From Penicillus capitatus (Eukaryota; Plantae; Chlorophyta), in NCBI GenBank assembly GCA_965649825.1, contig OZ287709.1, positions 310,001 to 374,000 of the forward strand: a stretch of 64,000 bases of DNA, in the 5' to 3' direction. This document shows positions 22,639 to 61,823 of this stretch, piece after piece; positions within the stretch are counted from its first letter, which is position 1; every line of letters starts with the position of its first letter. The notes beneath the pieces were generated by a model. The model ran no database searches. It saw only the letters and a list, made by a program, of their open reading frames with translations, and was not told the origin of the DNA. Made by a program: the position numbers and the translations under genes.

Positions 22639-25013
22639 ATGGTGACGGAACCGAAAGATGTGCTGACGCAACTTGCGTCGAGTGACGCCGAAGTGCAGTG
22701 CCACGCCGTGCGTTGCTTAAAGAACGAAATCATTGGCAATCTCAGCCGAAAGCAGTGTTTTATTGGATTGGGGGCTGTCCCGCGAATTGTCCGTATTCTT
22801 GCGTACCCTCAGGAGCAACGCCTCGCTGTTCAAGCAGCGGCGGCTTTAGGAAGCTTTGCTTATCAGAACGAAGAGGGTGTGGTTGCCATCGTCGAAAGGT
22901 ACGACCGGGTTTGCAGTCGATGACGCATCAAATACAGCGGTGTCTGCTTCTAGTGGCGGCGTGGCGCATTTACTGAAAGCACTGGCCAGTTCAGACAAAA
23001 AACTCGTGGAAGCAAGTGTGCGGTCACTCAAAATGATCTTCCAGGTATGGAGCATGCATGACATCACTCATCTTGCGTGCATGCATTCTATCCATGTGCG
23101 TGTTTGTATGTCCAGTCATCTATTTCGCCAAGGGATGTGATCTTCGTCCATCCGGCCTTTGATCGATTGGTAGAGTTTTTGGATATCAACGAAAAATCCT
23201 TTGCAGAAGATACGCTCATAATTTTTGCCAAATGCTGCCAGACCAAACAACACGTACGTCCATCGATCCGTCGCTGTTCCCACGGTCCTGACGAAGGGCC
23301 ATCCCTTGTGAACAGCAAGAGCTTCTGCTGAAATCGGGCGCTCTGCCAAAAATGATCAAACTTCTCTTTTCACCTGTCACGAGTATTCATGTAAGAAATC
23401 CATGCAGTATTAGATACGGCGAGATCTGAATGTGGGATGGCGATGGCAGTTAGCAGCCATGGAAGCATTGGACAAGTTTACGGCCCATCATATCGAAGTA
23501 TGCCAGAGTTTAGTGAAGCGAGATGACGTTGTGAAGACTCTGATGCGATTTCTCCGCGGCAGAAATATCCGTGTGCAGTACGCTGCCTGTTGTCTGCTGA
23601 GCAATCTCAGCGTCTCCGTCGATACGGGAGTACGTCGATCTCTTCTCTGCCTCCATCTTCAATAGCTGATGTGACAGTGTTGGTTCTCGAGTGAAGTGAC
23701 AGATGTGCTGGTGCGACTGTTGGAAGAGCCATCGCTGGTCTCGCGTGTTCCGGCAACACTTGCCAGTATTACCTGCCATCGATTGGAGCTCCAGGAGCTT
23801 GTCCACAAAGCAAACGGTTTCCGAAAACTCTGGACCTTTCTCACAATGGATGACGCTGAGAAAGACACGACTCTGTTGACCGGTATCGTCCAGGCGGTCG
23901 GGACCATGTGCCAATACCTGAAAGTCTGTCGTCGCGAGGTTTGTGCGTGCAGCTGCATCATAGATGTGTGAGAAATGACTGAGAGATGCTGTAGTTTGTG
24001 ACATCGCGTACCATCTGGCGGGTGTTATCGTTCATGGAATCGGAATCGCTCGAGCTACGACTGGCAACATCGCTGTGCTTCGAGACCATCGTGATGGAAA
24101 CGAACGAGGGCGCACGTTCCGTTCCTGTCACCCATTACTCGCAGGATCCCTCCATACGCCTAAAGGAATACGCATCCGTTGCCCTGACGATTCTTGTTTC
24201 CGAGCAAGAAGATCCGGAAGCTTATCTCCAAGAAACCTTGCAATTTCTCGTTCCCTATGCGCTGAGTCCGGAACCCAGTATCCGTTACAAGGCGATCTGG
24301 GGATTAGGTGATGTCATTCGGATGTGCTCCAATGAAAAGTGCAATCGATGGCTGCCCATTCTCAACGAACTCTTATGGAACTTCGTCCGCGAAATGGTGC
24401 AAGATGCATCGACCGAAGTTCAGGAAGAGGGATTGAGATTCCTCGAAGCGATGGTGCGTTGCAACATCGGCATCCAGGCAGCGATCGATTGGAGCAACGG
24501 AGAACTGCTCCCCCTCATCGCACAGAAAATCGACACGCCAAAGTCACATCACCGCCGCCGCCATCATCCACACTCCATCAAGCGTTGTGTGACGCAGGCC
24601 CAATCTCATGACGGTGACAACACTGGCTTTGAACATCGCCTCTTCTGTGGCGCATTCCGAAGTAGAGCATCAGACAGCAGTGATGGGATCGGGTGTGCCG
24701 CCCCGTCTGCTGGCATGTTTGGAGGAGCACTGTCCGGAGGCTGTCAAGAAAGCGGCCATCCACTGCGTTATTAACCTCACTTACAGAGACGTTCTCCCCT
24801 GGGGAGACGAAGACTACAGATCTGCGGATTGCAGAGCCAAGGTCTGTATGGCATGGCTCCTTAGCCTCCCTCTCCATTCCTCTCTCCTGTTCCCAGGCTC
24901 TCCTCGAATTGGGCATCGAAGAATCTTTGATGAAGTTAGAGAAAATAGGTGGATCGGAGTCACTGATGAAGCTCGTGAAAGATGCCAATGGCTTTCTTGG
25001 TCAGTTAGAGTAA
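22639..25013 (+). CDS. ARMC8: Armadillo-repeat protein ARMC8/GID5-like, copy 1
   Basis: LKNEIIGNLSRKQCFIGLGAVPRIVRIL, AAAALGSFAY, ARM repeats, and AAIHCVINL. The reconstructed exons stay in frame. Confidence 0.8.
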
Positions 25014-25471
25014 AACTGTTTCATATACTGTCGTCGTCGTCGTCGTCGTCGCTATCGTCTTCATTTTTTGATACCTACCTATCTACATAGAGACGCCTCA
25101 TATCATGCATTCTTCTCGTTGTTGTCAATTGCTTGTGCATTTAATCTGTTGTTGTTTCCGATCATTATCATCCTTGATCCCTATCCTCATCTCCTGCTTT
25201 GGCACTAACCGACGTGTGGGTGCTTTAGTCGGGACGGTGTGGCGCGGAGATGTGACGGAGCCTTGGAAGAATAATAGAGGGTGAGATGCATGAGCGTCAA
25301 TGCAGATGGACAGACAGACAGACACACATACCTACAGACACTGTTTAATCTTGGCTCACTTTGATCGACGACATGAATCATAGCATCGATCATTACCATC
25401 GACGTCATGATCATGCAGAACGCACGAACGCACACGAACGCACGCACATACGTCTGTATTGCATTTCTGAT

Positions 25472-27787
25472 ATGGCTCCCCAAAGTCGAGACCTTATTCG
25501 GCAGCTCAGCGCATCGGCGACGAACGACGCTGATTCGAAACTCCGTGCCGTTCGCAATTTGAAAAACGAGATTATCGGCAGTCAGAACAAGAAACAATGT
25601 TATTTGGAACTCGGCGCCGTGCCGAAGATCGTTCAGTTACTCGCGTCACAACAGGAAAAGAAATTGACGGTTCAAGCGGCGGCGACACTCGGAAGCTTTG
25701 CATACGGAAACGACGCTGGTGTGACGGCGGTCGTCGAGAGGTCGATTACTTCATCGAATCTTCACACTCCCTATAACATTTCTCACTCTCTAGCGGCGGT
25801 ATCGCCCATTTACTGAAAACGTTATCCAACGATGACGAAAAAGTGGTGGAAGCGGGTGTCCGGTCACTGAAGATGATTTTTCAGGTTGTTGTTCCGGAGG
25901 CTATCAAAACGTGTGAGATATGTGTGACCTGTAGTCCGCATTGTCGCCGCGAGACGTGATTTTTGTCCATCCTGCATTTGATCGTCTCGTCGCATTGCTC
26001 TTCAATCCAAAGAAGTCCTTTGCCGAAGACGCAGCAATGATTTTTGCAAAGTGCTGTCGAACAAAACAGCATGTAAGCAAACAGCATCTCACTCTTTCTC
26101 ACTCTCAGCTGCTGTGCTAGCAAGAGAAATTGATGATCTCAGGAGCACTAACCGGAATGGCTCGCCTCCTTGTCGCGCAATCACCCAATCGCCAAGCAAG
26201 ACATCACACTCTCACACTTTTTTGAGCGCCATCTCATTGGAGTGTTGTAGGCAGCAGCCTTGGAGGCCCTTGTGTCAATGTCACATCAAAATGCTGATGT
26301 GTGTGGAGCCCTTTTGAACATAGCAGGCGTTAAGAATGCACTCCTGAGCTTTACCAGAGATCCCAATTCGCGATTGCGTCTCATGGCCTGTTCCGTCCTG
26401 ACCAACATCAACAGGATGCTCTCGACCGACACGGACTGTCTCCTGACCTTCCGAGAACAGAAGCAGATACTGCAAGTTCTCGTCAAGCTTCTGCATGACT
26501 CAATCATCCAAGAAGGCGTGCCAGATATCCTGGCAACACTGACAGAAGACAGGTATTCATGACAACGCTCCAAAACGTGGGCGATATGTCGCACTGCTTT
26601 TCTGCAGAAAAGATCTCCAACAGGCAGCTTTTGAAGTGGATGCTGCTAAAAAGCTCTGTGGATTTTTGACCGATACAACGAAAGAGACCTCCGGGACGTT
26701 CAAAGTCGGCGTCTTGAGAGCACTGGCTACTATTTCGCGGCATCTCCCTGACTGTCGGCAACAGGTCAGCCATACACACCATCTCAAAGAGCACATACTC
26801 ACGTCTCGCATAGATTGTCAACTGTCAAGCCGTCCATGCCATCATCTCCTGTTTGAATGCCCCTCTGAGCGATGTTCGTGCCGCAGCTGCCTTCTGCATT
26901 CAGAAGATGACTGCCACGGTCCAAGACCTGCAGTATGATTGGGTTGTCGCATCCATCCACCCTCTCATCACACTCTTGGAGGACGATATGGTCGCTGTCA
27001 AGGTTGGCCCTTCCTTTTGCGTACTTCCTAAAACGGCCAGCTGTTGTGCCGTGCTTAGACCGAAGCGTGTGCCGCTCTCTGCAATCTTTTGTTCGAAATC
27101 AACCAGGCCAAGATGGCATGCGTTGAAAATTGCTTGCACTTGTTCGTGGATTTCACTCAAAGCGAGGAGCCACAGTTGGTCTCCCATGCCGCCTGGGCAT
27201 TCAAGAATCTCACACACGATCTTCCGGGAGATCACCGTTGTCGAGTTCTCAAAGAATTTCATTGGTCGATCGTCAAGAATCTTATGTATCATGACGATGC
27301 AGCCGTACAGACATCCGTTCTCTGCTTTATCCAAAACGTCTGCTCCTCCGATCCCGAAAGCATTCAGAGTGTCTTCGATTGGAGTCAAAAAGAATTGCTC
27401 CCTGTCGTCTCATCCAAGCTCGCCCAGAGTGAGACCACTCCAGCCGAAATCGTCACAGCTGCTCTGAGAGTGGTCAGCAATGTCGCGACCGGATCCCAGG
27501 AGCATCAGACGGCAGTGATGGATTCCGATATTCCTAGACTGTTGTTGACATGTCTGAGAGATCAGAGATCGGAGAGTATACGTGGCTTTGCTGCATGGTG
27601 TGTGATCAATTTGATCTGGCGTGATGAATTGCCATGCGCGAACAATGGAGGAGGAGAGGGGGCACGTCAGCGCGCGGCAGCGCTGAGGGAGATTGGTATC
27701 GAGGCACAAATGCGTCAGATGCAGGGCGATGCTTCATTAGATGTTCGCGAACGTGTGCAAACCGCAATTGGGTTCTTTTCCGTTTAA
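25472..27787 (+). CDS. ARMC8: Armadillo-repeat protein ARMC8/GID5-like, copy 2
   Basis: LKNEIIGSQNKKQCYLELGAVPKIVQLL, AAATLGSFAYG, AWAFKNL, AWCVINLIW and DASLDVRERVQTA. Confidence 0.88.
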
Positions 27788-27819
27788 ATAGTCGCATTTG
27801 ATAACGACTTATTGCGGAG

Positions 27820-28392
27820 ATGATGACGCGTCGTGCATTGACGCTGCTATGGACGCAGCGGCGCTTAAGTTCAGTGGAAACGTCGTCTATCGTGGGTGCG
27901 TTCGTTCGCAACTTCGCGGCGGCTGCCACGTCGAAAGGATCTGTTAAGAAAGAAACGAAAAAGGCGAAGAAGGCGGAGAATACAAGCGAGAAAAAGCCTC
28001 GCCGACTGTCGTCGTACGCTCTTTTTTTGAAAGAATTCCACACGAAGCAACGCAACATGGGCATCCCGTTACCAGAGCTTTCACGACAGGCATCGAAACA
28101 ATGGACCGAGATGTCGAAGGATCGCCAACAGAAGTATGTTGACGAAGCGAATCGATTGAATGTGATCGTGGACGTTGAGAAACCGAAAGTGAAGGATGCG
28201 GCAACGAAACGCTCGGCGAATCCATACATAGTGTTCTTCAAATCCGTCTGGCCGACCGTCACTCGACAGCATCCTGAAAAGACAGCTGCCGAGCGCGTTC
28301 GGATTGTGGCTGAAATGTGGAGAAATCTGTCTCCGGAGGAGAAGGCACGTCGCAAAGAGGCCTGCCTTGCTGTTAATGCTGCTGCTACGTGA
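27820..28392 (+). CDS. Twin HMG-box protein with a predicted mitochondrial presequence (TFAM/Abf2-like), intronless
   Basis: Arg/Ser-rich N terminus without acidic residues ending RNFAAAA. Two HMG boxes: KPRRLSSYALFLKE...WTEMS and KRSANPYIVFFK...WRNLSPEEK. Confidence 0.85.
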   Translation: MMTRRALTLLWTQRRLSSVETSSIVGAFVRNFAAAATSKGSVKKETKKAKKAENTSEKKPRRLSSYALFLKEFHTKQRNMGIPLPELSRQASKQWTEMSKDRQQKYVDEANRLNVIVDVEKPKVKDAATKRSANPYIVFFKSVWPTVTRQHPEKTAAERVRIVAEMWRNLSPEEKARRKEACLAVNAAAT

Positions 28393-28689
28393 TGTGACGT
28401 TTGTGTGAGATGATGTGACTGTCGGCTGGCTGGTCGGTTATGTACTGCCGGATAGGATTCCCTGTAAAAATGCGGACGGACGTTCGAGACACGCACGACG
28501 TTCGCACGATCTATTCACTATGGAGTGGATACGCTCACAGAATTAAAACTTTTCACGATCCTAGGATTCCCTTCATGACTTCGGTCTTCTCTGCCTTCCC
28601 GCAGAAGGTTGTACGGATGGTTACTCTTTTTTTCTTTTTTCTTGTTCTTTCTTCTTATCGAAGATGATAAACACCAAGATCATCAACGG

Positions 28690-28720
28690 GGCACAACCAC
28701 AACGACAACAACGAACAACA
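28690..28720 (+). repeat. AAC-rich simple repeat
   Basis: acaaccacaacgacaacaacgaacaacaa. Confidence 0.6.
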
Positions 28721-29398
28721 ATTCTCAATCTCCTGCGTTAAACGGGTCACCAAACATCAAGATCAAAGACGACGGACGACGTTCCATACACAAAAAGTGT
28801 CTAAGTTGATCACTCCGTCGTCCGATAGGAGAAATCAAATCATTAATCTGAACTTGGAAATAATGACGACCGAAGATGGCGTCGGAGGTCAGTGTGTTTC
28901 TGTGATCTCAACTCCTTTATTCAAATCCGCTGTGTCGATTTGGAATGGGGGAGGACTCAAACAAAGGCTGAAGCGAGTGAGCAAGCAAACAAGGTATGAC
29001 AAAACGGTGTCTCATAAATCAATCAATTGATCAAGTGTGGTCTGACAACATCACCACCACTACCACCCAGTTAAACAGTTATGCAAAGGACAACGTGTTT
29101 CGTTGTGTGGTGTGGTCGCTTGGTACTGCTGCATCGAGTATAAAACCGACGACTTGAAAAGAACAAAGTGAGAATCTCAATCAATCAATCACAACACGTC
29201 TGTCTTCCTACAAGGACCTTCCTTAGAAACACCTCATGTAACTGGGTTTATATGGGCAGTTAGTTGTCTCAGTTGTTGTTTCTTATTCACGATGCGAGAA
29301 CGGCAGGAAAAGGCATCGACCAGTTCATGGAAGAATCACCGGCTATAAGATGCAAGCTTCACTTGAGAGAAACACTCCCACACTGGCTGGTTTGAACA

Positions 29399-29432
29399 CC
29401 GAACGAACGAACAAACAAACGAACAAACAAAC
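29399..29432 (+). repeat. Mixed (GAAC)n/(AAAC)n microsatellite
   Basis: cgaacgaacgaacaaacaaacgaacaaacaaacg. A similar tract lies in reverse orientation at ~58620-58652. Confidence 0.7.
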
Positions 29433-29499
29433 GTCTGTATACAGAACACCCAAGCATCCCCCAAAATAGCACTGTTGCATGCATTATTCTCTGCGGATA

Positions 29500-32400
29500 T
29501 CGAAAGGGAGCTAAGACGCATGAATGGTCTGACTACCATCATGGTTACTGCGTCCACTACCGCCACTCTCCAGTGTCACGGAGTTCATAAAGCTCACGAG
29601 TTTACGGACCAGTTGTGTCTCCCCTACTCTTTGCAGCGCTGTGATGATCGTGTTATAAGATACCATGTCTGGTTGGACGGCATTACTCGAGACCATATGC
29701 TGGAAGACGTCCCAAGCAGATTGAGCAATGGTTGGCTTTGATACCACGTCTGCATTGAGAGCGCCTTCACTCAGAGCCGCCAGAACTTGATTGAATGTTG
29801 CCAGAGTTGGTTGAACATTCGAGTCATTTGTAATGAGGTGTTTCAGAACGTCCAGGGCCTTCTGCCAGTCACCCATTTGGCCATAGGCACAAATCAAAGT
29901 ATTGTACGTCACGATCGATGGTTCCACACCGGCTGCAAACATATCCTCAAACACATAGACGACCTAAACAGCAGCATCTCACACAAGTGTCACATCATCA
30001 AAGTGTGAGATACCTTGTCAGGTTGGGAACGTTTTTGATAGCTGGACATGATGATGTTAAAGGTCACGGCGTTGGGTTTCACTCTGGAATTCGACGAGAG
30101 AAGTGAATTGAAGAACTGCAAGGCATCGTTCCATCTACCCTCTTTCTCAAGGGCGGACAAGAATGCATTGGCACATGTTATATTTAACTCCATTCCCGAC
30201 TGCTGAAGCCATTCCCATACTTCAATCACTTTGTCATACCTCTGGGCATCACTGGCGACAGTAATCAGGGTTCCAAAGGTTGCAATGGAGGGCTCCAATC
30301 CACGCATACGCATGTTATGGTACACCTGGATATCACACATATTAACGATGTTGTCAGGGATGGAAATGTGTGAGATGACTTTGAATGCCATGTCCAATTG
30401 CTGTCCATTTCCACAGGCCTTCATCACCGTGTTGTACGAGACGATATCAGGACAGACTTCGCCGCCGCATTCCCACATCAGCTCAATGAGTTTCAATGCC
30501 TTTAACCACTGAGGCGGGTGCGCGCGGGCGTACGCCGCAAGCAGTGCATTGCAGCACACACGGTTGGGTGCCGTCTTTCTGTTGCTGATGCTCCTCGTAC
30601 GGAACATGACAGTGGCGGATGGAGCCGGGGCAGAACTTGCACGCGTCATGGGACATGTATTGTACAGAAAAGGACCTCCTCGTTGATGGGTGGGCGCACC
30701 GTATTGACCAGAAGACTCTTGTCCTGGTAACGACAAGCCATCTGCATTGACAGACAAGGTGCGCACGGGATCCACCTGCAGACAGACACCCATAGCGATC
30801 GAAAAATCGACGAAGGAGGGGGAGGAGGACATACCTGTTGTGGAACGAACGTGGATTCAGGAATCTCCGTCAAAGCTCTTTGCATGGAAAAGGATCCTGC
30901 ACGTGTGGTGGGTGTTCCGAAAAGATGGTCATTGGATGCCATGGCCGAAAAGGGTGTTGCCAGATGATTCAAGCTGCTTGTCGCATTGCTCTGGCGACCT
31001 GGGCTCAGAGGAGGAGGATGTGAACCTAATGCCGCGAAGGGAGTCGGTCCAGCAGATGCCGGTAAATTCATTGGGGTTGCTGGTGATGACGTCGGGGGTT
31101 GAGAGCGTTGCTGTTGGTGCTGTGTATCGACGGCGCTCTGCTCTGCCGATCGGTCACCTGCTACTGGCGTCGGTGGCGAATCTGCACGTGGCGGCGCCGC
31201 CTTGTGTGACGTCGTTGTCCGTGTTGGTGTCGTTGCTGTCATCAATGATGTACTGTTCTTTTCGGTCTCTGCCTGTTTTTCCGCTTCGGCAATGGTATCA
31301 TCAATGGAGAGTGCAGCCAGGACATCTGCAACTTCCTTCTCCGCAGTTGGCTGCGGTTTATCCGTATTGGCAAACAATGCGCGACTCTCTTCGGTAGCCA
31401 CATGATCAATCTGTGCTTGAATGGCGCCACTCGATTGCATGCTGACAGCGCGGCGTTCCATGAAGGGCATCGGAGGACTTCTACTCCAAGATCTCGGAGG
31501 AGGCGTCATCGGTTGACTGCTCTGAGGACTACTAACATTCCTGACAGAACTTGCACGGCCAAAACCTGGTGGACCAGAACGATGGGACCCACTAAACACA
31601 GGCATGCTATGCATACGACTCATATCCAAACCACCGCGCCTAGAATGCCATTCCTTAACACCTATCCCTCCATCCTCAGCAAAAGGCAGCGATGACTCAC
31701 GGTGTGGCGCTCTGCTGAGCTAAGACCATCTTCTCTCTCGTCTGGGGATCCAATGCATCGTCCATGCTCATCAACAGAACTTGAAACTGAGGATGCTCGG
31801 CATACATCGAGATAAACACCTGCTCCGCAATCTGCCACATGCCACCTATACATAAACATTTCTCACACTTTCTCACTCTTCCCCCACTGAATAGACCTTT
31901 GTCCAATGCGGATATCAGACTGCAGCAGGTAACGGCATCCGGATGGACATTGGCATTCATCATGTGATTGAACACATCGATTGCCAAACTGCATTGTCTT
32001 CCCTTAGAGAGGGCACTGATGACGGAAGAGTAAGTAATGGTGTCTCGGCAGAGTCCATGATTATCCATGTTGTAGAAAATCTGTAGCGCCTTTTCCCACT
32101 GGCCTCCGCGATCACAGGCAGAAATGGCGGCGTTTGTGATCGTGGTATCCGGTGTCAGGCCCATTTCTGGCAGCGATTCAAAAACCTCCAAGCCCTTCTG
32201 CCAATGTCCTTCGCGACTCAATCGGCTCACCAGTTTGGTTAATCCTACAGATACCGCAGATGCATGCACAAACATACATCGACGATTCGGGGTACCTGGC
32301 AACCGGGGACGAAACTGCGATGACGTCAAGATGCGCCGGATTTCGCCACAACCTGGACGCGCGGCATTCAGCGCCGCCGTTAAACTAAAACGAACAAACA

Positions 32401-32515
32401 TAGAGAGTCCCTAAAGTTATCGCGTATCTTTGCGTTTTTACCTGCGCATGTCATAAACGCGCGAAAAACCCCGTCCCCTCGGCGGAGCAGGCATACCCGT
32501 CGCGTATGGGTCCAT
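29500..32515 (-). CDS. P-class PPR protein with two PPR tracts separated by a long Ser/Pro/Thr-rich disordered region (multi-exon)
   Basis: PDTTITNAAISAC, DTITYSSVISAL, PNRVCCNALLAAYAR, PDIVSYNTVMKAC and PSIVTYNTLICAY. Start and 3' end are approximate. Confidence 0.9.
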
Positions 32516-33267
32516 CTCCTGCGCGTCTCTGCGGCCACAGCAACACGTTCTCTTCACGTCTCTGTGCGCGGCGACCTGGGTCTCACCGTCGTCTTCGATA
32601 GCTCGGGTCTTGGTGTACGAGCGCGCCACGGTTTTGGTTGATGGTTGGAACGTAGTGCGACAAAAACAGCGTGTCAACCGCAAAGTTCCCTTTCGCATCA
32701 CCCATCATTAAAGGAGCAAACGCACGTCTCTCGTTGCTCTGCCGCGACGAACGTAGATGACCGACTGACTAGCAGAAGAGATTTAAGGAGAGGACCGTGA
32801 CAGGACTGTCTGAAAGAACGTTGAGGACAGCGGACGATTTCCGACGCGTAAGACGCGGCAGTCAAAGGCGGTTTAGTGACAACGAGGCACGGACACCAGG
32901 TTATAGACACCGCGGCCGATATCGTGATTCATATGCGTCCTCCACAAGTTCGCAGTTGAATTCCTGATAACTTCGTGCTGCCACGTGGATAAGGACGATC
33001 GCTTGATCGATAAGGCATCGCGTTCACAGTGGAAGTTATTACTCAAAGTGAGACCAAAGAGCATAGTTGATCCACTTGTCGATATCCAAACATATTCTCC
33101 ATTTTCTCTCATATTCCTCAGCATGCATATAAACACAGAACAAAGAAAAGAAAAGATCGACGGCGTCTTGGACGCTCAAGAGTTTCAGACAGGCAGACAG
33201 AAAGAAGGTGCAGAGATACGATGTGATATGATATGACTGGGTGTATGTTTGGGCAATGGTTTAGTGA

Positions 33268-34951
33268 TTAGGCTTCGGGTTTGGCCGTTTCCGTCATGTT
33301 CACTTCCATCTCTTCGGCCTTGAGTCGCTTATTACCACGTTGAGATTTGCTCTCCGCTGCAAACTTTACGGAAGCCGAGGCTAATCCCGCTGCGATCTCT
33401 TCAGGCGTATACTCGCCAAGATAGTAATCCTCTTCAGTGACGTCAGGTTTGGCAGAGCAGAACATTCCGCCCCACATGGGGAACCAGATCAAGGCGATGG
33501 TGATGGTGATGCCAATAATCATAAAGCCCATATAACGGATGCCTTCGTATGTTTCCAAGTTATCGGGCTTGAAGAAGATCGCTTGGGTGACAGCCGAGCC
33601 AGCATTGCCACCAGCTCCGACGAAGCCGGACACGATACCCAACGCTCTTTTGGACACGAAAGGCACCACACCATACGAGGCGCCCTCAGAGGCCTGAACG
33701 AGAAGACTGAAGCACATCATGGCAATGATGGTGCCGGCGAGAGTATCTTGCAGAAGACCCATGACAATGCACAGCACACCTGGTGGCCAGTCACACATTG
33801 GTCATTCTTTTGGTGTCCACAAGAACAGAGGTCGTGACCTTCAGCTGTTTGCAATAGGTAAAGTGCCCATAGACGTCCACGCATGCCCCAGATCTTTGCT
33901 GTTTGATCGGAGATTGCGCCGCCGATGGAACGCGCAACGATGTTCATCAGACCAAAGAGTGCACCCAACACGCCAGCTGTTGTCAGCGGAACATCGAACT
34001 GATCAAAAAAGTATTGCACAACGATGTTGTTCATCGTCAGTTCAACGCCGAAGCAGTAACCGTATGTCAGCGTCAGCACCCACATGCGATAGTTTTTCAC
34101 GCCGATCATAAAGACGCCGGATCCTTTTGCTTTCTGCATTTGACCCGACTTGTGCAGCTCTCCATAAGTACCGTCCGGCAGATCTTGGGTAAAAAACAGG
34201 ACGATCAGTCCGACCATGATGTGCATGCAGCCAGGGACGAAGAAGGCATAACGCCATGCGAAAAATGGTTCTTGCGTTCGTTTGATACCTAAACAGCACC
34301 AAGGCCTGTATACTGAGCTAACGTGTGATGTGACAGGTACCGGTGAAGACAAGGGGAAGGAGTAATTGGGTGACCCCACCTCCGAGATTCCCCCATCCAG
34401 CTCCCGTCGCGTTTGCTATCCCCACGATTTTCACATTGAACATCACGGAGCTCCAGAATTGACAGGCGACGAACGTCGCCAGAGAGAAGCCGATCAGAAA
34501 ACGACAGGCGATGAAACCACCAGCAGAGTTGACGAGACTCATTCCAAAAACAGCAGGTGCCGAGAGAAGCATCAAGACTGCATGGCCGAAACGTGGCCCG
34601 ACCAGGTCGCAGACGCTCCCCATGGCCACACGTGCAGCGATCGTCCCAGTCACTGCCGCGATACCAGCATCCGCCAAGTTGCCTTTGTCAAGGTCGACGG
34701 CATCACGTATGATAGGAATCAAAGCCGCAGGGCCAAACGTCGAAACGAACGACGTAAAGAAAGAAAACCACGACGCGTGAAAGGCGCGCATATGGACGCC
34801 GCGAAATATCCATGGCCTAAACAGCGTCGCCTTGTGCTCGCTGTCGACGGGCAACAGAAAGTTGCTCTCGGCATTGCCGGTGTCTTCCTTCGCTGCGATA
34901 ACATGAAACCGACGTCGGGCAACGTCTCGTAGCGAACAGTGTGTTACCCAT
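33268..34951 (-). CDS. NRT2: High-affinity nitrate transporter (NNP family)
   Basis: [17 protein letters not shown] signature, [21 protein letters not shown] and GAGGNAG. Exon 1 is just ATGG. Confidence 0.96.
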
Positions 34952-40818: not shown

Positions 40819-43326
40819 TCACTCTTGTGCAAGAACATCATTCTTTTCGTAAAACCTGACCAAACGTCTGTAGACATCGGGACGCAGTCGCACGCCCATC
40901 GCTTTCATCTTCTCAAGGTACACCGTCATGTTGTTCAAATCGCCTGTCGTGGTACAGGCATTGATGAGAGAAGCAAAGACAGCTCTACTGCGAGGCATTC
41001 TTTCCCGATTCATGAAACTCCACAGTCGATCGATCGACGATGCAATGAGCTCTTTCGAGATGTGCGTTGGCCGCGAGAGTTCGTCAATAAACGTCGTGTA
41101 GGTAATGGGTGTGGGCCACACTTCATTCTCTTTCATCTCGTCCAGCATCGCAAACGCCTCCTCTACGTTTCTGGCACGTATGAGGATAAGGATGACGACA
41201 TTGTACACGGCAGGGGTCATCGGAACGGCATCCCTCTGCATCTCGCGCAGCAGCTTTCGGGTTTGCTGTACACATTCTTCTCTGTTCGTCTCCCTTATCA
41301 GATTTGCGTAAAGAAGGAGGAGCATGTGGTATGTATGGAAGCTCGGTGGCACGCCTTTCGCCTTCATCTCCTCCAGCACCTCAACTGCTTTCTCCACCAT
41401 TTTCGCACGGTTGCAGATCTTAATGATCGCATTGTACACGACGCCGTTGGCAGGAATGCCGGTTTTCTCCATCTCATCAAGCATCTCTCTGGCGAGCTGC
41501 AAACGCTCTGCGCCATTCTGCTTACATGTCGTCTCGGCATAGAGTTCCATCATCAGCGAATAGGAGCAGACGTCAGGAACGATGCCGTTCTCCTTCATCT
41601 CATCAAACAGTTTGTTTGCCTCCTCTGTCATCCTCGCCCGTACACAGAGCTTCATCGGAAAGCCGTACAGCCAGCTGGACATCGGCAAACCTTTGCTTCG
41701 CATCTCGGCAAGAATTTCCTTGCATTTTGCCAGATGCTCTTCGCTGTTTTCGAAATCGGCGGTTTCGGAGTAGAGACAGAGAAGCGAGTTGTAGACGTGA
41801 ACGGACGATTCTTCTCCGTTCGCCTTGATCTCATCCAACACTCTAAATGCCTCGTCTTTCATTTTGGCCCGGGCGCAGAGCTTGAAGAGGGAGCTGCGTG
41901 TGGACGTCTTGTCCGATATGCCCTCCATCTCCATTTCGCTGATCAATCTCTTGCACAGCCTTAGGTATTTTTCACCGTTTGCCGGTTTCGCCATTTCCGC
42001 ATAGTACTCGATCAGCAGGTTGTACAGTTTGGTATCGAACTCCACTTCATCCAGCTTCATATCTTTCAGAACGGCAGATATGTTCACGACCTTCCCATCG
42101 ATGCACGTCCTCATGAGGGGCTTGTATGTTCGGAACGATGGCTGAATGTTTGCTCTCCGCATCTCGTCCAGCAGCGCTGTGGATTTCCTCAAACGTTCTT
42201 CGCCGTTGTCAGGGTTTGTGTCTTTTGCATACAGCGAAATGATCATGTTGTATGTATGTGTCGTCGGCGGCACGCCTTTCGCCTTCATCTCCTCCAGCAC
42301 CTCAACCGCCTTCTCCGCCATTTTCGCACGGTTACAGACCTTGACGATCGCGTTGTATACCATGCTGCAGGCAGGAACACCTGTTGTCTCCATCTCACGC
42401 ATCAGCTCGTCGCACACCTCCAGATACTCGGCGCCGTTTTCTTCGCCTACTGTTCCGGCGTAGCTTTCCATCAGCATCGTGTAGGCATGAACACTCGCCT
42501 TCACTCCATTTCTCTTCATCTCATCAAAGACATTGCGCGCCTCCTGTGTCATCCCTGCTCGTACACAGAGTTTGATGAGGGTGTTGTATGTCCAGCTGCT
42601 CGGTTGAAATCCATTCTGTCGCATTTGAGTCAAGAGTTTTTTGCTCTCCTTCAGATACCGTGCTCCATTGTGTTTATCGGCGGCGGAAGCATAGACCGCA
42701 ACGAGGGTGCTATACACGGTCGCGGTTTTTTCAATTCCCCGTTCGATCATCCCTTCCACGATTTGCTTCGTCTTCTCCACGTCGCCCGATTTCAGACACA
42801 CTTTCAGTAGAGCGTAATACACGTGCATATCTGGCTTGATGTTGTAGGTCTCTTCCATTTCTGAAAGCAATCGTTCGGCTCGACGCAGGTTCGCTGTCAT
42901 GTGGCAGGTCTCGATCAGTATCATAAAAATGTATCTGTTTGGCATCACTCTTGCACGCTTCATCTCGTTGTACAACTCAAAAACCCTGGAGAAACGTTTT
43001 CGCGTCTTGCTGAATCCGTGCATCAAAGTGGCGAATGTCGACACATCTGGCTGGTATCCATCGCTCTTGAGCTTCTCGAATACAAACTCTGCCTTGCGGA
43101 TTTCTCTCTTTTTCACCAAGTGCACCAAGAGCTTGTTGAATTTCTGCCGCTTCATCATCGATTTGACGGGTTTCTGATCTTTGACTGGATAACAAGGGCG
43201 CATCTGATCGCCTTTCTTAGGCTCAGGGCGAAAATCGTAGAACAAGAAAACGTCGCTTTCGGGTGGCGTTGCTGGCGGCGTCGGCGGCGTCAATCGAAGT
43301 CCCCTCGGTCTCGAAGGCCTGGCCAC
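40819..43326 (-). CDS. Intronless PPR protein (835 aa) with alternating 42-aa and 35-aa motifs
   Basis: About 20 PPR-like motifs (e.g. TYNTLIKLCVRAG, VYNAIVKVCNRAK). Internal DNA duplication with a 921-bp period. Confidence 0.95.
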   Translation of the reverse strand: MARPSRPRGLRLTPPTPPATPPESDVFLFYDFRPEPKKGDQMRPCYPVKDQKPVKSMMKRQKFNKLLVHLVKKREIRKAEFVFEKLKSDGYQPDVSTFATLMHGFSKTRKRFSRVFELYNEMKRARVMPNRYIFMILIETCHMTANLRRAERLLSEMEETYNIKPDMHVYYALLKVCLKSGDVEKTKQIVEGMIERGIEKTATVYSTLVAVYASAADKHNGARYLKESKKLLTQMRQNGFQPSSWTYNTLIKLCVRAGMTQEARNVFDEMKRNGVKASVHAYTMLMESYAGTVGEENGAEYLEVCDELMREMETTGVPACSMVYNAIVKVCNRAKMAEKAVEVLEEMKAKGVPPTTHTYNMIISLYAKDTNPDNGEERLRKSTALLDEMRRANIQPSFRTYKPLMRTCIDGKVVNISAVLKDMKLDEVEFDTKLYNLLIEYYAEMAKPANGEKYLRLCKRLISEMEMEGISDKTSTRSSLFKLCARAKMKDEAFRVLDEIKANGEESSVHVYNSLLCLYSETADFENSEEHLAKCKEILAEMRSKGLPMSSWLYGFPMKLCVRARMTEEANKLFDEMKENGIVPDVCSYSLMMELYAETTCKQNGAERLQLAREMLDEMEKTGIPANGVVYNAIIKICNRAKMVEKAVEVLEEMKAKGVPPSFHTYHMLLLLYANLIRETNREECVQQTRKLLREMQRDAVPMTPAVYNVVILILIRARNVEEAFAMLDEMKENEVWPTPITYTTFIDELSRPTHISKELIASSIDRLWSFMNRERMPRSRAVFASLINACTTTGDLNNMTVYLEKMKAMGVRLRPDVYRRLVRFYEKNDVLAQE

Positions 43327-45941: not shown

Positions 45942-48900
45942 TTACGTGAAAGCGCTATCATTCGAAGCACGTCGCTTCTTGCATCCAATATCTGTCTCTT
46001 CTTCACTCGGTTTGCACTTTCGTGTGGTGAATGTCAAGTTCACGCGGAGAGACTCCTGACGCGAATCTGGATGCATAAACTCGACAACAGATTCTCTGCC
46101 GATCCCAACGCCCTTCGTCGCGTTCACATTCACGACGCCCTTGTTCGCTCGATACGATTGCTTCCCAAGAATGTCCGTCGATACAGCAAGCACGGTGAGA
46201 TCTGCACAACAGACACGTATCACGATAGCGGCATTCATTGTTCGAGTACGGAACGGGCATCGGGGATGCCACCAGTGATGGTTTGGTCGAAGGCGTCTCG
46301 GACTTCGATCTTGATGCCGTCCTCTCGATCGTCCTTGCAGGTTTCGAGCTTCGAGCATGAAGGCAATAGTCTCTCGCCACCTCGATGTTCAGCGATATGT
46401 CCAGATGGCGGGTCAGTTATCACAAGAGCATAGGCACGACTGGCGATGTCCTGCTCGCGCTTCTCAGTCGACGTCTGCGCATAGGAAAGAACCCTAGATT
46501 GAGGGCATGAGGATGGGAGATGGACGTGCCTGGACGAAGTTTTTCTTGAAACGGAAGCAGTCTCTTAGTGGTGGGCTTCTTTTCGTCGCTTGACTGAGGG
46601 GTATCCAGCGTTTCATTTTTGATCGTTCCTGGCCGCAGCCGACGATCACCATTTCTGGATTGGTTATGAACAGTCCGCCGCCCCAGAAGCGAGCCTCGTT
46701 CCCCACGAACGTCATTTTCATTAGATGAAAGAGACGGCAGGGCTGGACGACAAGGCCAGAAGATATACAGTCGGATTTCTTCTCGTTGCTCCACGTGCCA
46801 GAGATACTGGCGAAGAGGCCACCTGTACCAGACCATCAGAAAATGCTTGTCGAGAACGGGCATCTTACCACCAACCAATGCACGGTTCTGTTTAAACGCC
46901 ACTCCAAAGAAGCGCACATCGGCCATGGCCTTCTCCGGAATATCATCCAGCGCCAAACACATCCCGCCGCCGCCGCCATTGCCGCAAAGGGATGACGAAG
47001 TTGCGTTCGAATTCATCTTCCCGACAGCCAAAAGCGATCGCGAGGCACTCCCGGCATAGAGCACTGCCCAGATCTGCTCAGCATCGACCGCTTGGTTTTG
47101 AGTAAAGCGAGAATGTTTCATCTAACACGCAGGCAGGACAGTTGTGAAGGAAAGGGGCAAAGGGCGTGTTTGAGCATACTTGGAAACTGTTTTCTTTCTG
47201 TCGATTGGCATCGACGAAGACGCCGCCGCCGGACACTGCTGTATTGTTCACAAATTCATTCCACCAGTTTTCTTTGGCCGATGCAAATCGCACTTGAGCT
47301 GCTGCTCTGAAAGCAGCTCCGCCTCCATGTACGGCAGCATTGTCTCGGAAAGAACACTGTTCGATGTCGACGTCGTAAAAAGAGTCCAGGACAAAGAGGC
47401 CGCCGCCGGCTTCCGTTGCTTGATTGTTCGTGAAATAAACGTTCCTCAGTAACAGAATTCCGCATCCGGCGCAGATCAGAGCGCCGCCGTCCTTGGCTGA
47501 ATTCCTGGCGAACAGATTTTGCTCGCCAGGTGCTTCTTCTCCGGCTGCGTCTAATACCGGTGCTGCCGTGAACTGTGCTCCGTTCGTCAACAGCAGAGCT
47601 CCACCAAGATCCACTGCCGAATTCTCTGTCCATGTGGTTCGCAACGCACGAATGTCACCGGTGTTCCGGAAAACGGCGGCTCCTCCAGCTTCACCTGCCC
47701 AGTTGTTCTCAAAGGTGCAGCCATCCAACGCGATCGGATTCTGAAAAAGAGTGACCATGTGGAGGGCGCCGCCACTCGACCGCGCACGATTGTCAGTAAA
47801 GATCGATGTCAAGATATCGAACTTTGCCAGTGTGGTCGCAGAGGAAGCGAAGTAAACGGCCCCTCCCAGATGGTCTCCTACATTATCGTACCTACTCTTC
47901 TTAGCAGCCGCCGCCACGTTGTCTCGAAAAAGGCATTGTGCAATGACGACAGAGATACTGTTCTTCAGTCCAATGAGCTCTGTGGCGTCCAGGCTTGCGT
48001 ATATGGCGCCGCCGCTTGTGGCACGGTTGGATTTAAACTCGGAATGGGTCACCGTAAGATTCCCAGCCGATATCGCTGCAATAGCGCCGCCTCCGTTTGC
48101 AGGAGATTGAAAGACAAAGTAACGGCTGCGTTCAATCAGGAGGCCGCTTTCCTGGTAGATCAATCTCTGGAATCCCTCTTCCACCACTGTGTTCTTGACA
48201 AACCGGCAATTCGAGACATTCAGCTCCGTTCTCGCACCAGCAACGTAGATCGCGCCGCCATTTGAAAGGGCACGATTGTCTGTGAAGTTCGTTCCCATGA
48301 CTGTCAGTGCACACTGCTCGCCAAAGATAGCGCCACCCATGGGCGATGCGTTCTCTCTGAACACGCTGTCTCTGATCGTCACATCGACGTCAGCCGCATC
48401 ACACTCTTTGTCAAAACACCCTCCAACATAGAGAGCTCCACCCGGCGTGTAGCTGTCTTTGTTTGTATTGTCCTCGAAAATCACGTCCTCGAAGACAATG
48501 CCTGCAACGAGGGAATCGCTGCGGCCATGGTTAACGACGACAGCTGGATAGCCACGGCATCCCTTCAGTGTCATGGACGATACTGTGATGTTTCGTGCCC
48601 TGGAGGAAACGACATCGAGAAGGACAAGGCGCTGTAGTCGTCGAACTTGATCGTGAGAATGGGATCATCCTCTGGACAGCTGAGGATTGTTTTGGCCGAT
48701 GTACCAACGAGATGTATGTTAGGTGTGTCCATCAACAGGCTCTTGGACAGCTTGAACGTGCCATCGGCCAGAATGACAGTGTTTCCCGTTTTCACATTGC
48801 CCAGTGCCGTCTCCAATTCTTTGACGGTGGACAGACGGTTCTCGCTGCTTCGCCGGAGAGAAATACGTCGATCTACAATCAGAGATGCGTTTGGACAGAC

Positions 48901-60590: not shown

Positions 60591-61823
60591 AATGGACGAC
60601 GCATCGAAAGCGCGACTCCGTTGGGAGTTGGAGAACAGTATCCCGTCATCGGAAGACAGCGACGCCCTCTTTCGTTACGATGCGGCGGAGGAACAGACCA
60701 TCCGCCGCCAACGTCCCTGGAGCAACGACCCGCATTACTTTAAACAGTACCCCTTCTCCGAATCGACATCGCCCCCCTCACTCTCTTGTCGTGTGATAGT
60801 GTGAAGATTTCTGCTCTGGCGTTACTGAAGATGGCAATGCATGCCAAATCTGGTGGTACCCTTGAGGTGAGGCACGACGAAACGGCTTGAGATCGTGAGT
60901 ACATAAGGGCATGGAGATTTGAAGGTGATGGGACTGATGCAAGGGAAGATCCAGCACCACACGTTCGTCGTTCTGGACAGCTTTGCCCTTCCCGTCGAAG
61001 GAACGGAGACGCGAGTCAATGCCATGGACTCGGCCAATGTCTTTATGTGCGAATACATCAGCCTCTATGGAGTGCGCACCATTCTTCCACCTGTCACATC
61101 GTTCGTTGATGTCGGGTGTTGGTGGTTCAGGAGTTGGGTCACGGGGAAAATGTCATTGGCTGGTATCACAGTCATCCAGGCTATGGATGTTGGCTGTCAG
61201 GAATCGACGTGTCCACGCAGATGACCAATCAACAGGGACAGGATCCTTTTCTCGCCGTCGTCATCGACCCTGTCCGCACCATGTCTTCAGGAAAAGTCGA
61301 GATCGGCGCCTTCCGTACCTTTCCCGAAGGATTCAAGCCAGAAGATGAAGGGCCGTCTGAATACCAGACGATTCCCCTCGACAAGATCGAAGACTTTGGT
61401 GTCCATGCCAAGCAGTACTACGCACTGGACATTGCCTTTTTCAAATCTGCCCTCAATGCACGTCTGTTGGATCTGCTGTGGAAGGACTATTGGGTGAAGA
61501 CACTGTCTGCCTCACCGTTGCTCTTGAATCGTGGATTTGTCCGTCGTCAGTTGTCAGATATCGGTGAGAAGATGCAGGCGGCGGAATGTCAGTTGAGCCA
61601 TCGCATCAATCGGTATGCAGTTTCGTCAGATGAACGAAAAAAGGAAGAGGGCGTCTTGGTTAAATTGCACAGAGATACGTGCAAGATGGCATTGGAACAA
61701 GTCAAGGGTCTATCCAGTCAGATCATTAAATGCATGTTGTTTCATCAGCACAGTAATGACATGGCGGCGGCTTTCGATAGTCAGATGGATGCTGAAGATG
61801 TCGTTGTTTCGGAAGAACACTAG
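60591..61823 (+). CDS. CSN5: COP9 signalosome subunit 5 (JAMM protease)
   Basis: [39 protein letters not shown] and [10 protein letters not shown]. Confidence 0.97.

Follow-up and report, generated by a model that had tools for sequence, protein, structure and literature searches.

The gene at positions 27820..28392 on the + strand of the 64-kb window (the whole stretch of DNA analysed, G+C ~50%) encodes a tandem HMG-box (2xHMG) protein that joins the green-algal organelle-type kind including HBD1 and HBD2, to which it is likened by description, and does not descend from TFAM or Abf2. Its best explanation is a nuclear-encoded basic protein that is imported via a cleavable presequence and packages organelle DNA, with the mitochondrion as the likelier destination, either alone or with the plastid; we give this reading a probability of roughly 55%. 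Taken separately, a role as an organellar nucleoid protein of whichever compartment appears highly probable, while the balance tips only slightly towards a location that is at least partly mitochondrial. The features on which the analysis draws are as follows.

27089..27787, + strand: last exon of the upstream ARM/HEAT-repeat gene (Pfam Arm, E 1e-8), with its stop 32 nt ahead of the HMG start
27820..28392, + strand: tandem HMG-box CDS, complete and single-exon (ORF list, Pfam, colinearity with contig L003, dN/dS)
27820..27915, + strand: putative cleavable presequence, aa 1-32, ending R30-N-F↓A33 (composition, conserved motif and predicted helix; cleavage and destination presumed)
27916..27990, + strand: Lys-rich disordered arm, aa 33-57, sequence AAAATSKGSVKKETKKAKKAENTSE (pLDDT < 50)
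27991..28167, + strand: HMG box 1, aa 58-116 (PF09011; helices 65-80, 84-97 and 100-119, pLDDT ~90-95)
28168..28203, + strand: short flexible linker, aa 117-128 (residues 121-129 at pLDDT < 50)
28204..28362, + strand: HMG box 2, aa 129-181 (PF00505 over aa 129-177; confident helices 135-150, 156-168 and 172-189)
28363..28392, + strand: nine-residue C-terminus and stop, ending LAVNAAAT-stop, with neither a TFAM-like nor an acidic tail
28463..28467, + strand: TGTAA, candidate poly(A) signal, 71 nt past the HMG stop and kept in contig L001, where it lies 67 nt past the stop

The HMG ORF is not a chance reading frame but a real gene. According to the ORF list its 190 codons run uninterrupted from two adjacent start codons (ATG ATG) to a TGA stop, and the coordinates that the sequence-only reading had assigned to a 190-aa ORF with two HMG boxes proved exact, with Pfam and AlphaFold2 in agreement on the boxes. 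The predicted mass of the precursor is 21.7 kDa, and no second copy of the HMG gene was found within the 64-kb window. The CDS is colinear with an uninterrupted HMG ORF on a contig (L003) from a metagenome scan, whose product is a relative with 51% identity. Short GT-AG introns (47-64 nt) interrupt the PPR gene that lies downstream in the window, and all of them are absent from L003, which is most simply read, from its sequence, as a probable cDNA-derived contig. That the HMG ORF is unspliced in this cDNA-like contig supports both the expression of the gene and its single-exon model. An antisense ORF of 296 aa (27606..28496) was also considered as a gene and rejected, as Pfam gives no match to it and L001 does not keep it intact.

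Comparison with L001, the contig that carries relative P0002, adds a record of selection. Window positions 23665-34371 align to it with 88% DNA identity, and the least conserved stretch of this alignment is the HMG gene with its immediate 3' flank (69-79%, against mostly 85-99% in the flanking genes). The HMG gene gave a dN of 0.20, a dS of 0.57 and a dN/dS of 0.36, compared with 0.025, 0.39 and 0.06 for the ARM exon and 0.003, 0.32 and 0.01 for the PPR exon. Within the HMG gene, dN/dS was lowest in the two boxes (0.29 and 0.20), and the linker was free to vary. With an overall ratio of 0.36 and the boxes as its most constrained parts, the gene is therefore under purifying selection, yet fast-evolving. 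Fast evolution has also been described for mitochondrial HMG proteins (review PMC7463775), and a ratio of 0.36 against 0.01-0.06 in the neighbouring genes would fit the behaviour documented for them.

The genomic context of the gene is shared by its relatives. At all four loci compared (the window, L001, L002 and L003) an ARM/HEAT-repeat gene on the same strand is followed by the HMG gene and then by a convergent PPR gene. The spacing between the ARM stop and the HMG start, 32 nt in the window, is 34 nt in L001, 68 nt in L002 and 19 nt in L003. Stop-codon readthrough or an ARM-HMG fusion was rejected, since the two frames differ and the four spacers keep no common frame. UGUAA is the poly(A) signal of chlorophytes, and from 27000 to 29000 the + strand has no TGTAA other than the one at 28463. 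L003, the cDNA-like contig, runs across the junction of the ARM and HMG genes. The tight spacing, the lone downstream TGTAA and the span of L003 together point to a transcript that is shared or overlapping. For green algae, bicistronic mRNAs have been documented (PMC7896298), although the upstream ORFs there are short, with medians of 444-600 nt, whereas the ARM gene here is long. The region between the HMG and PPR genes (~28525-29510) is 87-97% identical between the window and L001, above the HMG CDS itself, and it contains islands that are kept even in L003 and L002, such as ATTAAAAC(T/A)TTCACGATC at 28542-28560. Neither an Rfam scan of the window at gathering thresholds nor one of 28380-29520 at E <= 1 gave a match, and the window holds no tRNAs.

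Relatives of the protein came from searches of different depth. A word-indexed search with the single protein as query returned only two, P0002 (64% identity) and P0003 (44%), whereas an exhaustive HMMER search over 1.84 billion representatives gave 412 matches at E <= 1e-3. Most of the close relatives are metagenome or Logan contigs, and the named cluster members comprise only Caulerpa, Bryopsis, Chromochloris, Volvox, Coccomyxa, cryptophyte and insect proteins; among the matches listed by the profile version of the word-indexed search there was no named Chlamydomonas protein. Closest to the window protein are short green-algal 2xHMG proteins with a presequence, namely g8726 of Caulerpa lentillifera (g8726.t1, the closest named relative), BSKO_11622 of Bryopsis and Cz09g19260 of Chromochloris, which share a type of box 2. 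A CSN5 fragment encoded at 61116-61820 points the same way: the named proteins that it matches best come from Bryopsis sp. KO-2023 (67%), from Chlamydomonas species and from land plants, which places the host in Viridiplantae near the Bryopsidales. Both results bear out the earlier assignment of this DNA to a green alga. The G+C of the window (~50%) lies near the value of 52.4% published for the nuclear genome of Ostreobium quekettii, and the host is probably a bryopsidalean ulvophyte, Ostreobium-like in kind. The second-best library match, P0124 (868 aa), was rejected as a close relative because its score adds up over repeats; it is a Gln-rich protein with several 2xHMG modules of the cryptophyte type.

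We placed the protein among 45 two-box proteins in a neighbour-joining tree, which is rough, being a distance method applied to a short alignment. In this tree the window protein falls in a clade (A) with P0002, P0003, P0125, P0126, P0131 and the Caulerpa protein. A second clade (B), which includes Bryopsis BSKO_11622, adjoins it, the Chromochloris protein sits in a looser group, and the fungal proteins of the Abf2 type, with Abf2 (P0270) among them, cluster apart from the window protein. Cross-scoring of box-wise profiles indicated that clades A and B share one type of box 2, with scores of 54-65 bits between them. All other groups outside clade C scored 22-44 bits; within clade C, P0167 reached 59 and P0144 reached 45, and the remaining members scored 28-38 bits, as did the fungal proteins. 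Abf2 itself lies at 28-38 bits, although a score in the low 40s is reached by several proteins that are unrelated. Clades A and B also have in common the signature EEKxRRK in box 2, at a position where most HMG boxes have Tyr, and R178 is nearly invariant across the green-algal set. The window clade has a divergent box 1, with an SGYxLFLK motif and without the canonical N-P turn. By descent, as judged from the tree and the box profiles, the window protein groups with the green-algal tandem-HMG proteins.

The layout of the protein is supported by domain profiles and by structure prediction. Pfam places HMG boxes over about aa 58-116 and 129-177, with PF00505 matching in two stretches (E 3e-17; 63.3 bits, where the curated cutoff is 25.4) and PF09011 reaching E 7.9e-15. 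An AlphaFold2 model built from a 15-row alignment contains two three-helix boxes (block pLDDT 89-96) behind a low-confidence N-terminus with helices at residues 4-16 and 24-35, and the Foldseek matches of the model are all HMG boxes. By Pfam and AlphaFold2 alike there are two boxes, not three as in the plant 3xHMG-box proteins. Together with composition, these results uphold the order given in the sequence-only reading, in which a presequence-like N-terminal stretch is followed by a box, a short linker and a second box. The linker is the most variable part among the relatives and differs in length as well, and the C-terminus is just as short in them. Box 1 can be aligned to box 1 of Abf2 and to box A of HMGB1. 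In the alignments the primary-wedge position is Ala67 in box 1, as in HMGB1 box A, and Ile137 in box 2, opposite an Ile in Abf2 and a Phe in HMGB1 box B; the residue varies within the window clade. The protein carries a net charge of +21 and no acidic C-terminal tail, and the putative mature form has a pI of 10.2 and a net charge of +17.

The sequence-only reading had called the protein TFAM/Abf2-like, and this description stands only in part. With the single sequence as query, the best solved structure was Abf2 (5jgh, E 8.7e-10, in one alignment over both boxes), ahead of the HMGB1 A-B tandem (3.8e-7) and of TFAM, which was reached via box 2 only (~2e-3). With a family profile of 20 green-algal-type relatives, Abf2 (7.8e-27) and HMGB1 A-B (2.7e-26) were each matched in one alignment, and TFAM followed below both (2.6e-22) in two separate stretches. 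Foldseek likewise ranked tandem HMGB1 and Abf2 together (E ~1e-4), with TFAM at ~4e-2; its TM-scores are low, since the model sets the two boxes in an arbitrary orientation to each other. Abf2 and nuclear HMGB1 are thus indistinguishable by sequence profile and by fold search. The layout does resemble that of Abf2 more than that of TFAM. However, given the equal scores of Abf2 and HMGB1, the separate cluster of Abf2 in the tree and the affinity of box 2 to green-algal proteins, the resemblance to Abf2 is therefore architectural and not specific.

A published precedent for such a protein exists in green algae. In Chlamydomonas, HBD1 (Cre16.g672300), a protein of ~22 kDa that has a pair of HMG boxes, acts as a 'DNA clip' of the plastid nucleoid; it compacts plastid nucleoids and rescues yeast abf2 (PMC8157925), in agreement with the earlier description of HBD1 as a tandem-HMG nucleoid protein of the plastid. 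HBD2 (Cre17.g702650), expressed in N. benthamiana, was found mostly in mitochondria and partly in plastids, and HBD3, another 2xHMG protein of Chlamydomonas, is nuclear (PMC8157925). Proteins of this type are widespread among green algae, including Volvox, Coccomyxa, Micromonas and Ostreococcus, and their two-box layout probably arose by independent duplications (PMC8157925). The proposal that the window encodes an organelle DNA-packaging protein of the green lineage therefore holds up as the best reading of its role, but the kind of protein is not new: with HBD1 and HBD2 already published (PMC8157925), a mitochondrial packaging protein falls within a known kind.

Evidence on the compartment comes from the N-terminus. 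Residues 1-32 contain 5 Arg, no Lys and 1 Glu. R30 is invariant in clade A, and R-x-F/L followed by A, T, V or G is present in 10 of 10 clade-A sequences and in L003, in the variants RNF↓A, RSF↓V, RGF↓A, RAF↓T, RSF↓T, RAL↓A, RFL↓G and RAF↓A (the last being that of L003; arrows mark the putative cleavage site). A mitochondrial -3R motif, RX(F/Y/L)↓(A/S), processed by MPP and ICP55, is conserved in yeast, Arabidopsis and Acanthamoeba, whereas plastid processing sites resemble (V/I)X(A/C/M/S)↓(A/S/V) (PMC4986872). The R-x-F↓A site at residues 30-33 would fit the mitochondrial motif. The same RX(F/L)↓(S/A) motif occurs in dual-targeted plant proteins (PMC4986872). Plastid transit peptides of Chlamydomonas have an unstructured stretch ahead of the helix and average 49 aa, compared with 37 aa for mitochondrial presequences (PMC10363480). 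Here the helix predicted in the low-confidence N-terminus of the AlphaFold2 model begins at residue 4, with no unstructured stretch before it, and the presequence is ~32 aa long; the hydrophobic moment of this helix is only moderate. Taken together, the R-x-F↓A site and the helix from residue 4 favour mitochondrial or dual import.

These same features bear on the possibility that the protein is confined to the plastid, as a functional equivalent or orthologue of HBD1 that is imported by a short transit peptide and clips the DNA of the plastid to form globular nucleoids. In size (~22 kDa) and two-box layout HBD1 is the same, and its presequence likewise looks mitochondrial: its TargetP mitochondrial score is 0.996, yet HBD1:YFP is exclusively plastidic (PMC8157925). 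Presequence features in algae are therefore weak evidence. Short algal transit peptides can moreover depend on unstructured sequence beyond the cleavage site (PMC10363480), and the disordered residues 33-57 of the model could serve as such a downstream element. A V-G-A↓F string at residues 25-28 fits the plastid motif (V/I)X(A/C)↓A loosely, but unlike the R-x-F↓A site it is not kept in the relatives. The shortness of the presequence and the lack of an unstructured stretch ahead of the first predicted helix also speak against a plastid-only protein, and so may the position of Volvox Vafri_9529, the sole volvocine protein among the relatives retrieved, whose N-terminus is of the VCA↓A type and which lies outside the window clade in the rough tree. 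On this evidence we regard a plastid-only protein as unlikely.

A nuclear destination was also weighed, in which the protein would be an architectural component of chromatin of the HMGB1 A-B or HBD3 type and its N-terminal extension would have no targeting role. The tandem boxes of HMGB1 match as well as Abf2 by family profile and Foldseek, the wedge residues follow the HMGB1 pattern (Ala in box 1 as in box A, hydrophobic in box 2 as in box B), and HBD3 provides a nuclear 2xHMG protein in Chlamydomonas. However, the protein has no acidic C-terminal tail, and its N-terminus is hydrophobic, Arg-rich and nearly free of acidic residues, carries a processing-type motif in every clade-A relative and is unlike that of the nuclear HMG proteins among the matches, whose starts are rich in Lys and Pro. 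The dN/dS of 0.36 likewise points away from the nucleus, rapid evolution being typical of organellar HMG proteins. We accordingly judge a nuclear protein to be quite improbable. Least probable is that the protein descends from the eukaryotic ancestor as a true orthologue of animal TFAM or fungal Abf2 and serves as a mitochondrial transcription factor: among PDB sequences Abf2 is the single best match, in one alignment across both boxes, and shares the presequence-box-box order, but HMGB1 scores equally within error and TFAM lower and box by box, the fungal Abf2-like proteins cluster separately, box 2 is closest to green-algal proteins (clade B, P0167 and P0144), the helical linker and C-terminal tail of TFAM are absent, and the published analysis prefers independent box duplications (PMC8157925). 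A reading as the kinetoplastid protein KAP6 was dropped, as the window contains GT-AG introns and a plant-like CSN5.

Returning to the preferred reading of an imported packaging protein, we infer import, cleavage site, destination and DNA compaction along the following lines. The Arg-rich N-terminal presequence would direct the protein into a DNA-containing organelle, the mitochondrion being the likelier one, alone or together with the plastid, and cleavage at R30-N-F↓A33 would leave a mature protein of ~18 kDa. Each HMG box would bind the minor groove without sequence specificity and bend the DNA. The two boxes, joined by a short flexible linker and assisted by the Lys-rich arm (aa 33-57), which probably contributes to DNA affinity, would then produce U-turns and bridge duplexes, thereby compacting the nucleoid by a mechanism such as yeast Abf2 and HBD1 of Chlamydomonas have been shown to use. 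Neither a long helical linker nor a C-terminal tail, the activator features of TFAM, is present, and packaging is therefore likelier than promoter activation.

As it stands, the protein is an expected family member and leaves the field's picture unchanged. A 2020 review states that plants have no identified mitochondrial packaging protein of the HMG type (PMC7463775). Among the green-algal proteins, HBD1, which is plastidic, is the only one to have been characterised, and HBD2 is a mitochondrial candidate on the basis of a heterologous test. Mitochondrial genomes of the Bryopsidales are unusually inflated (PMC6944098), and the 2xHMG proteins with presequences that form a bryopsidalean clade are further candidates from this group. 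A cell-biological toolbox has been reported for Bryopsis, itself a bryopsidalean alga. A mitochondrial destination of the window protein is plausible; it would support the repeated recruitment of tandem HMG boxes for organelle DNA packaging and give a handle on the organisation of mitochondrial nucleoids in the green lineage. A wider proposal, which we put forward tentatively and think more doubtful than the preferred reading, is that clade A, including Caulerpa g8726, is a dedicated mitochondrial DNA packager of siphonous green algae and an independent counterpart of TFAM and Abf2, with clade B as its plastid paralogue and a conserved bicistronic or overlapping ARM-HMG transcript.

Known systems resemble the window protein to different degrees. 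Glom of Physarum and KAP6 of Trypanosoma are tandem-HMG proteins that were independently recruited for the packaging of mitochondrial DNA. Glom also has a Lys-rich N-terminal region (PMC7463775), but it is much larger and contains a Pro-rich domain. The A-B tandem of HMGB1 has the same profile score and fold match as Abf2 and the same succession of an A-box-like and a B-box-like wedge position; it differs in having no presequence, in contrast to the presequence-like N-terminus of the window protein, and in its longer inter-box linker and acidic C-terminal tail. TFAM is likewise a mitochondrial tandem-HMG protein, one that forces DNA into a U-turn. Its linker is long (~30 aa) and helical, whereas that of the window protein is ~12 aa long and disordered (residues 121-129), and its matches are weaker and box by box. 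Its transcription-activating C-terminal tail measures ~25-29 aa (PMC7463775), where only 9 aa follow box 2 here; adding this tail to Abf2 suffices to turn Abf2 into a transcription activator (review PMC7463775).

Abf2 (PDB 5jgh/5jh0) shares with the window protein a presequence (putative here), two boxes, a short linker and the absence of a C-terminal activation tail, and it is a fast-evolving packaging protein, a role that the window protein would share. The window protein differs in its Lys-rich N-terminal arm and in helix 3 of box 2, which has an R instead of the Y found in Abf2 and in most HMG boxes; the distance tree puts Abf2 in a cluster apart from it, and its similarity to Abf2 does not exceed that to nuclear HMGB1. 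HBD1 and HBD2, compared here by their published description, are likewise green-algal, ~20-22 kDa, very basic proteins with two HMG boxes, no long tail and an N-terminal extension of the targeting type, which is putative in the window protein. The window protein differs from them in coming from another class of green algae (Ulvophyceae, Bryopsidales-like).

In the window, the HMG gene begins 32 nt beyond the end of the upstream ARM/HEAT-repeat gene, on the same strand and in a different reading frame, and this close spacing is common to three contigs from relatives (L001, L002 and the cDNA-like L003).

ARM/HEAT-HMG junctions and their spacing
Window 27785-27822, + strand, 32 nt
L001 5964-6003, 34 nt
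L002 1585-1658, 68 nt
L003 155-179, 19 nt

The junction is contained within L003, and the ARM/HEAT and HMG ORFs may share a bicistronic or overlapping transcript. On the + strand between 27000 and 29000, TGTAA occurs once, at 28463, downstream of the HMG stop. In the window, the convergent PPR gene (29400-32586, - strand) is split by very short introns of 47-64 nt, eight or nine in number; most have readable GT-AG ends, and two are in frame. The same PPR protein is encoded at L003 1342-4035 as a single 897-aa ORF from which all of these introns are absent, suggesting that L003 is RNA-derived.

Other features of the neighbourhood (window coordinates)
29511-32700, - strand, convergent PPR gene
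40819-43326, - strand, PPR gene, uninterrupted 835-aa ORF
47078-48574, - strand, 498-aa ORF
27606-28496, - strand, 296-aa antisense ORF covering the entire HMG gene

Two large PPR genes lie near the HMG gene (29511-32700 and 40819-43326, both on the - strand). The translation of the 498-aa ORF is, by eye, apparently repeat-rich and rich in Gly, Ala and Asn. The antisense ORF is almost certainly spurious as a gene, since it has no match in Pfam and in L001 it is broken up, leaving fragments 62-82 aa long. Upstream of the ARM/HEAT gene, a 42-nt unit present in roughly one and a half copies in the window (23665-23723) forms about a dozen tandem copies in L001 (1338-1848), a minisatellite expansion.

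Within the 10.7 kb common to the window and L001, the HMG gene (27820-28550) evolves fastest relative to its flanks, with a dN/dS of 0.36 and a dS of 0.57, compared with 0.01-0.06 and 0.32-0.39, respectively, for the neighbouring exons. Its coding sequence is only 70-79% identical to that of L001, below the 87-97% observed across the HMG-PPR intergenic region (28525-29510), for which Rfam returned no match. Short islands in this region, for example at 28542-28560, 28846-28860, ~28915-28930 and ~29108-29127, and including ATTAAAAC(T/A)TTCACGATC and ATCTGAACTTGGAA, persist even in L003 and L002, both of them distant contigs.
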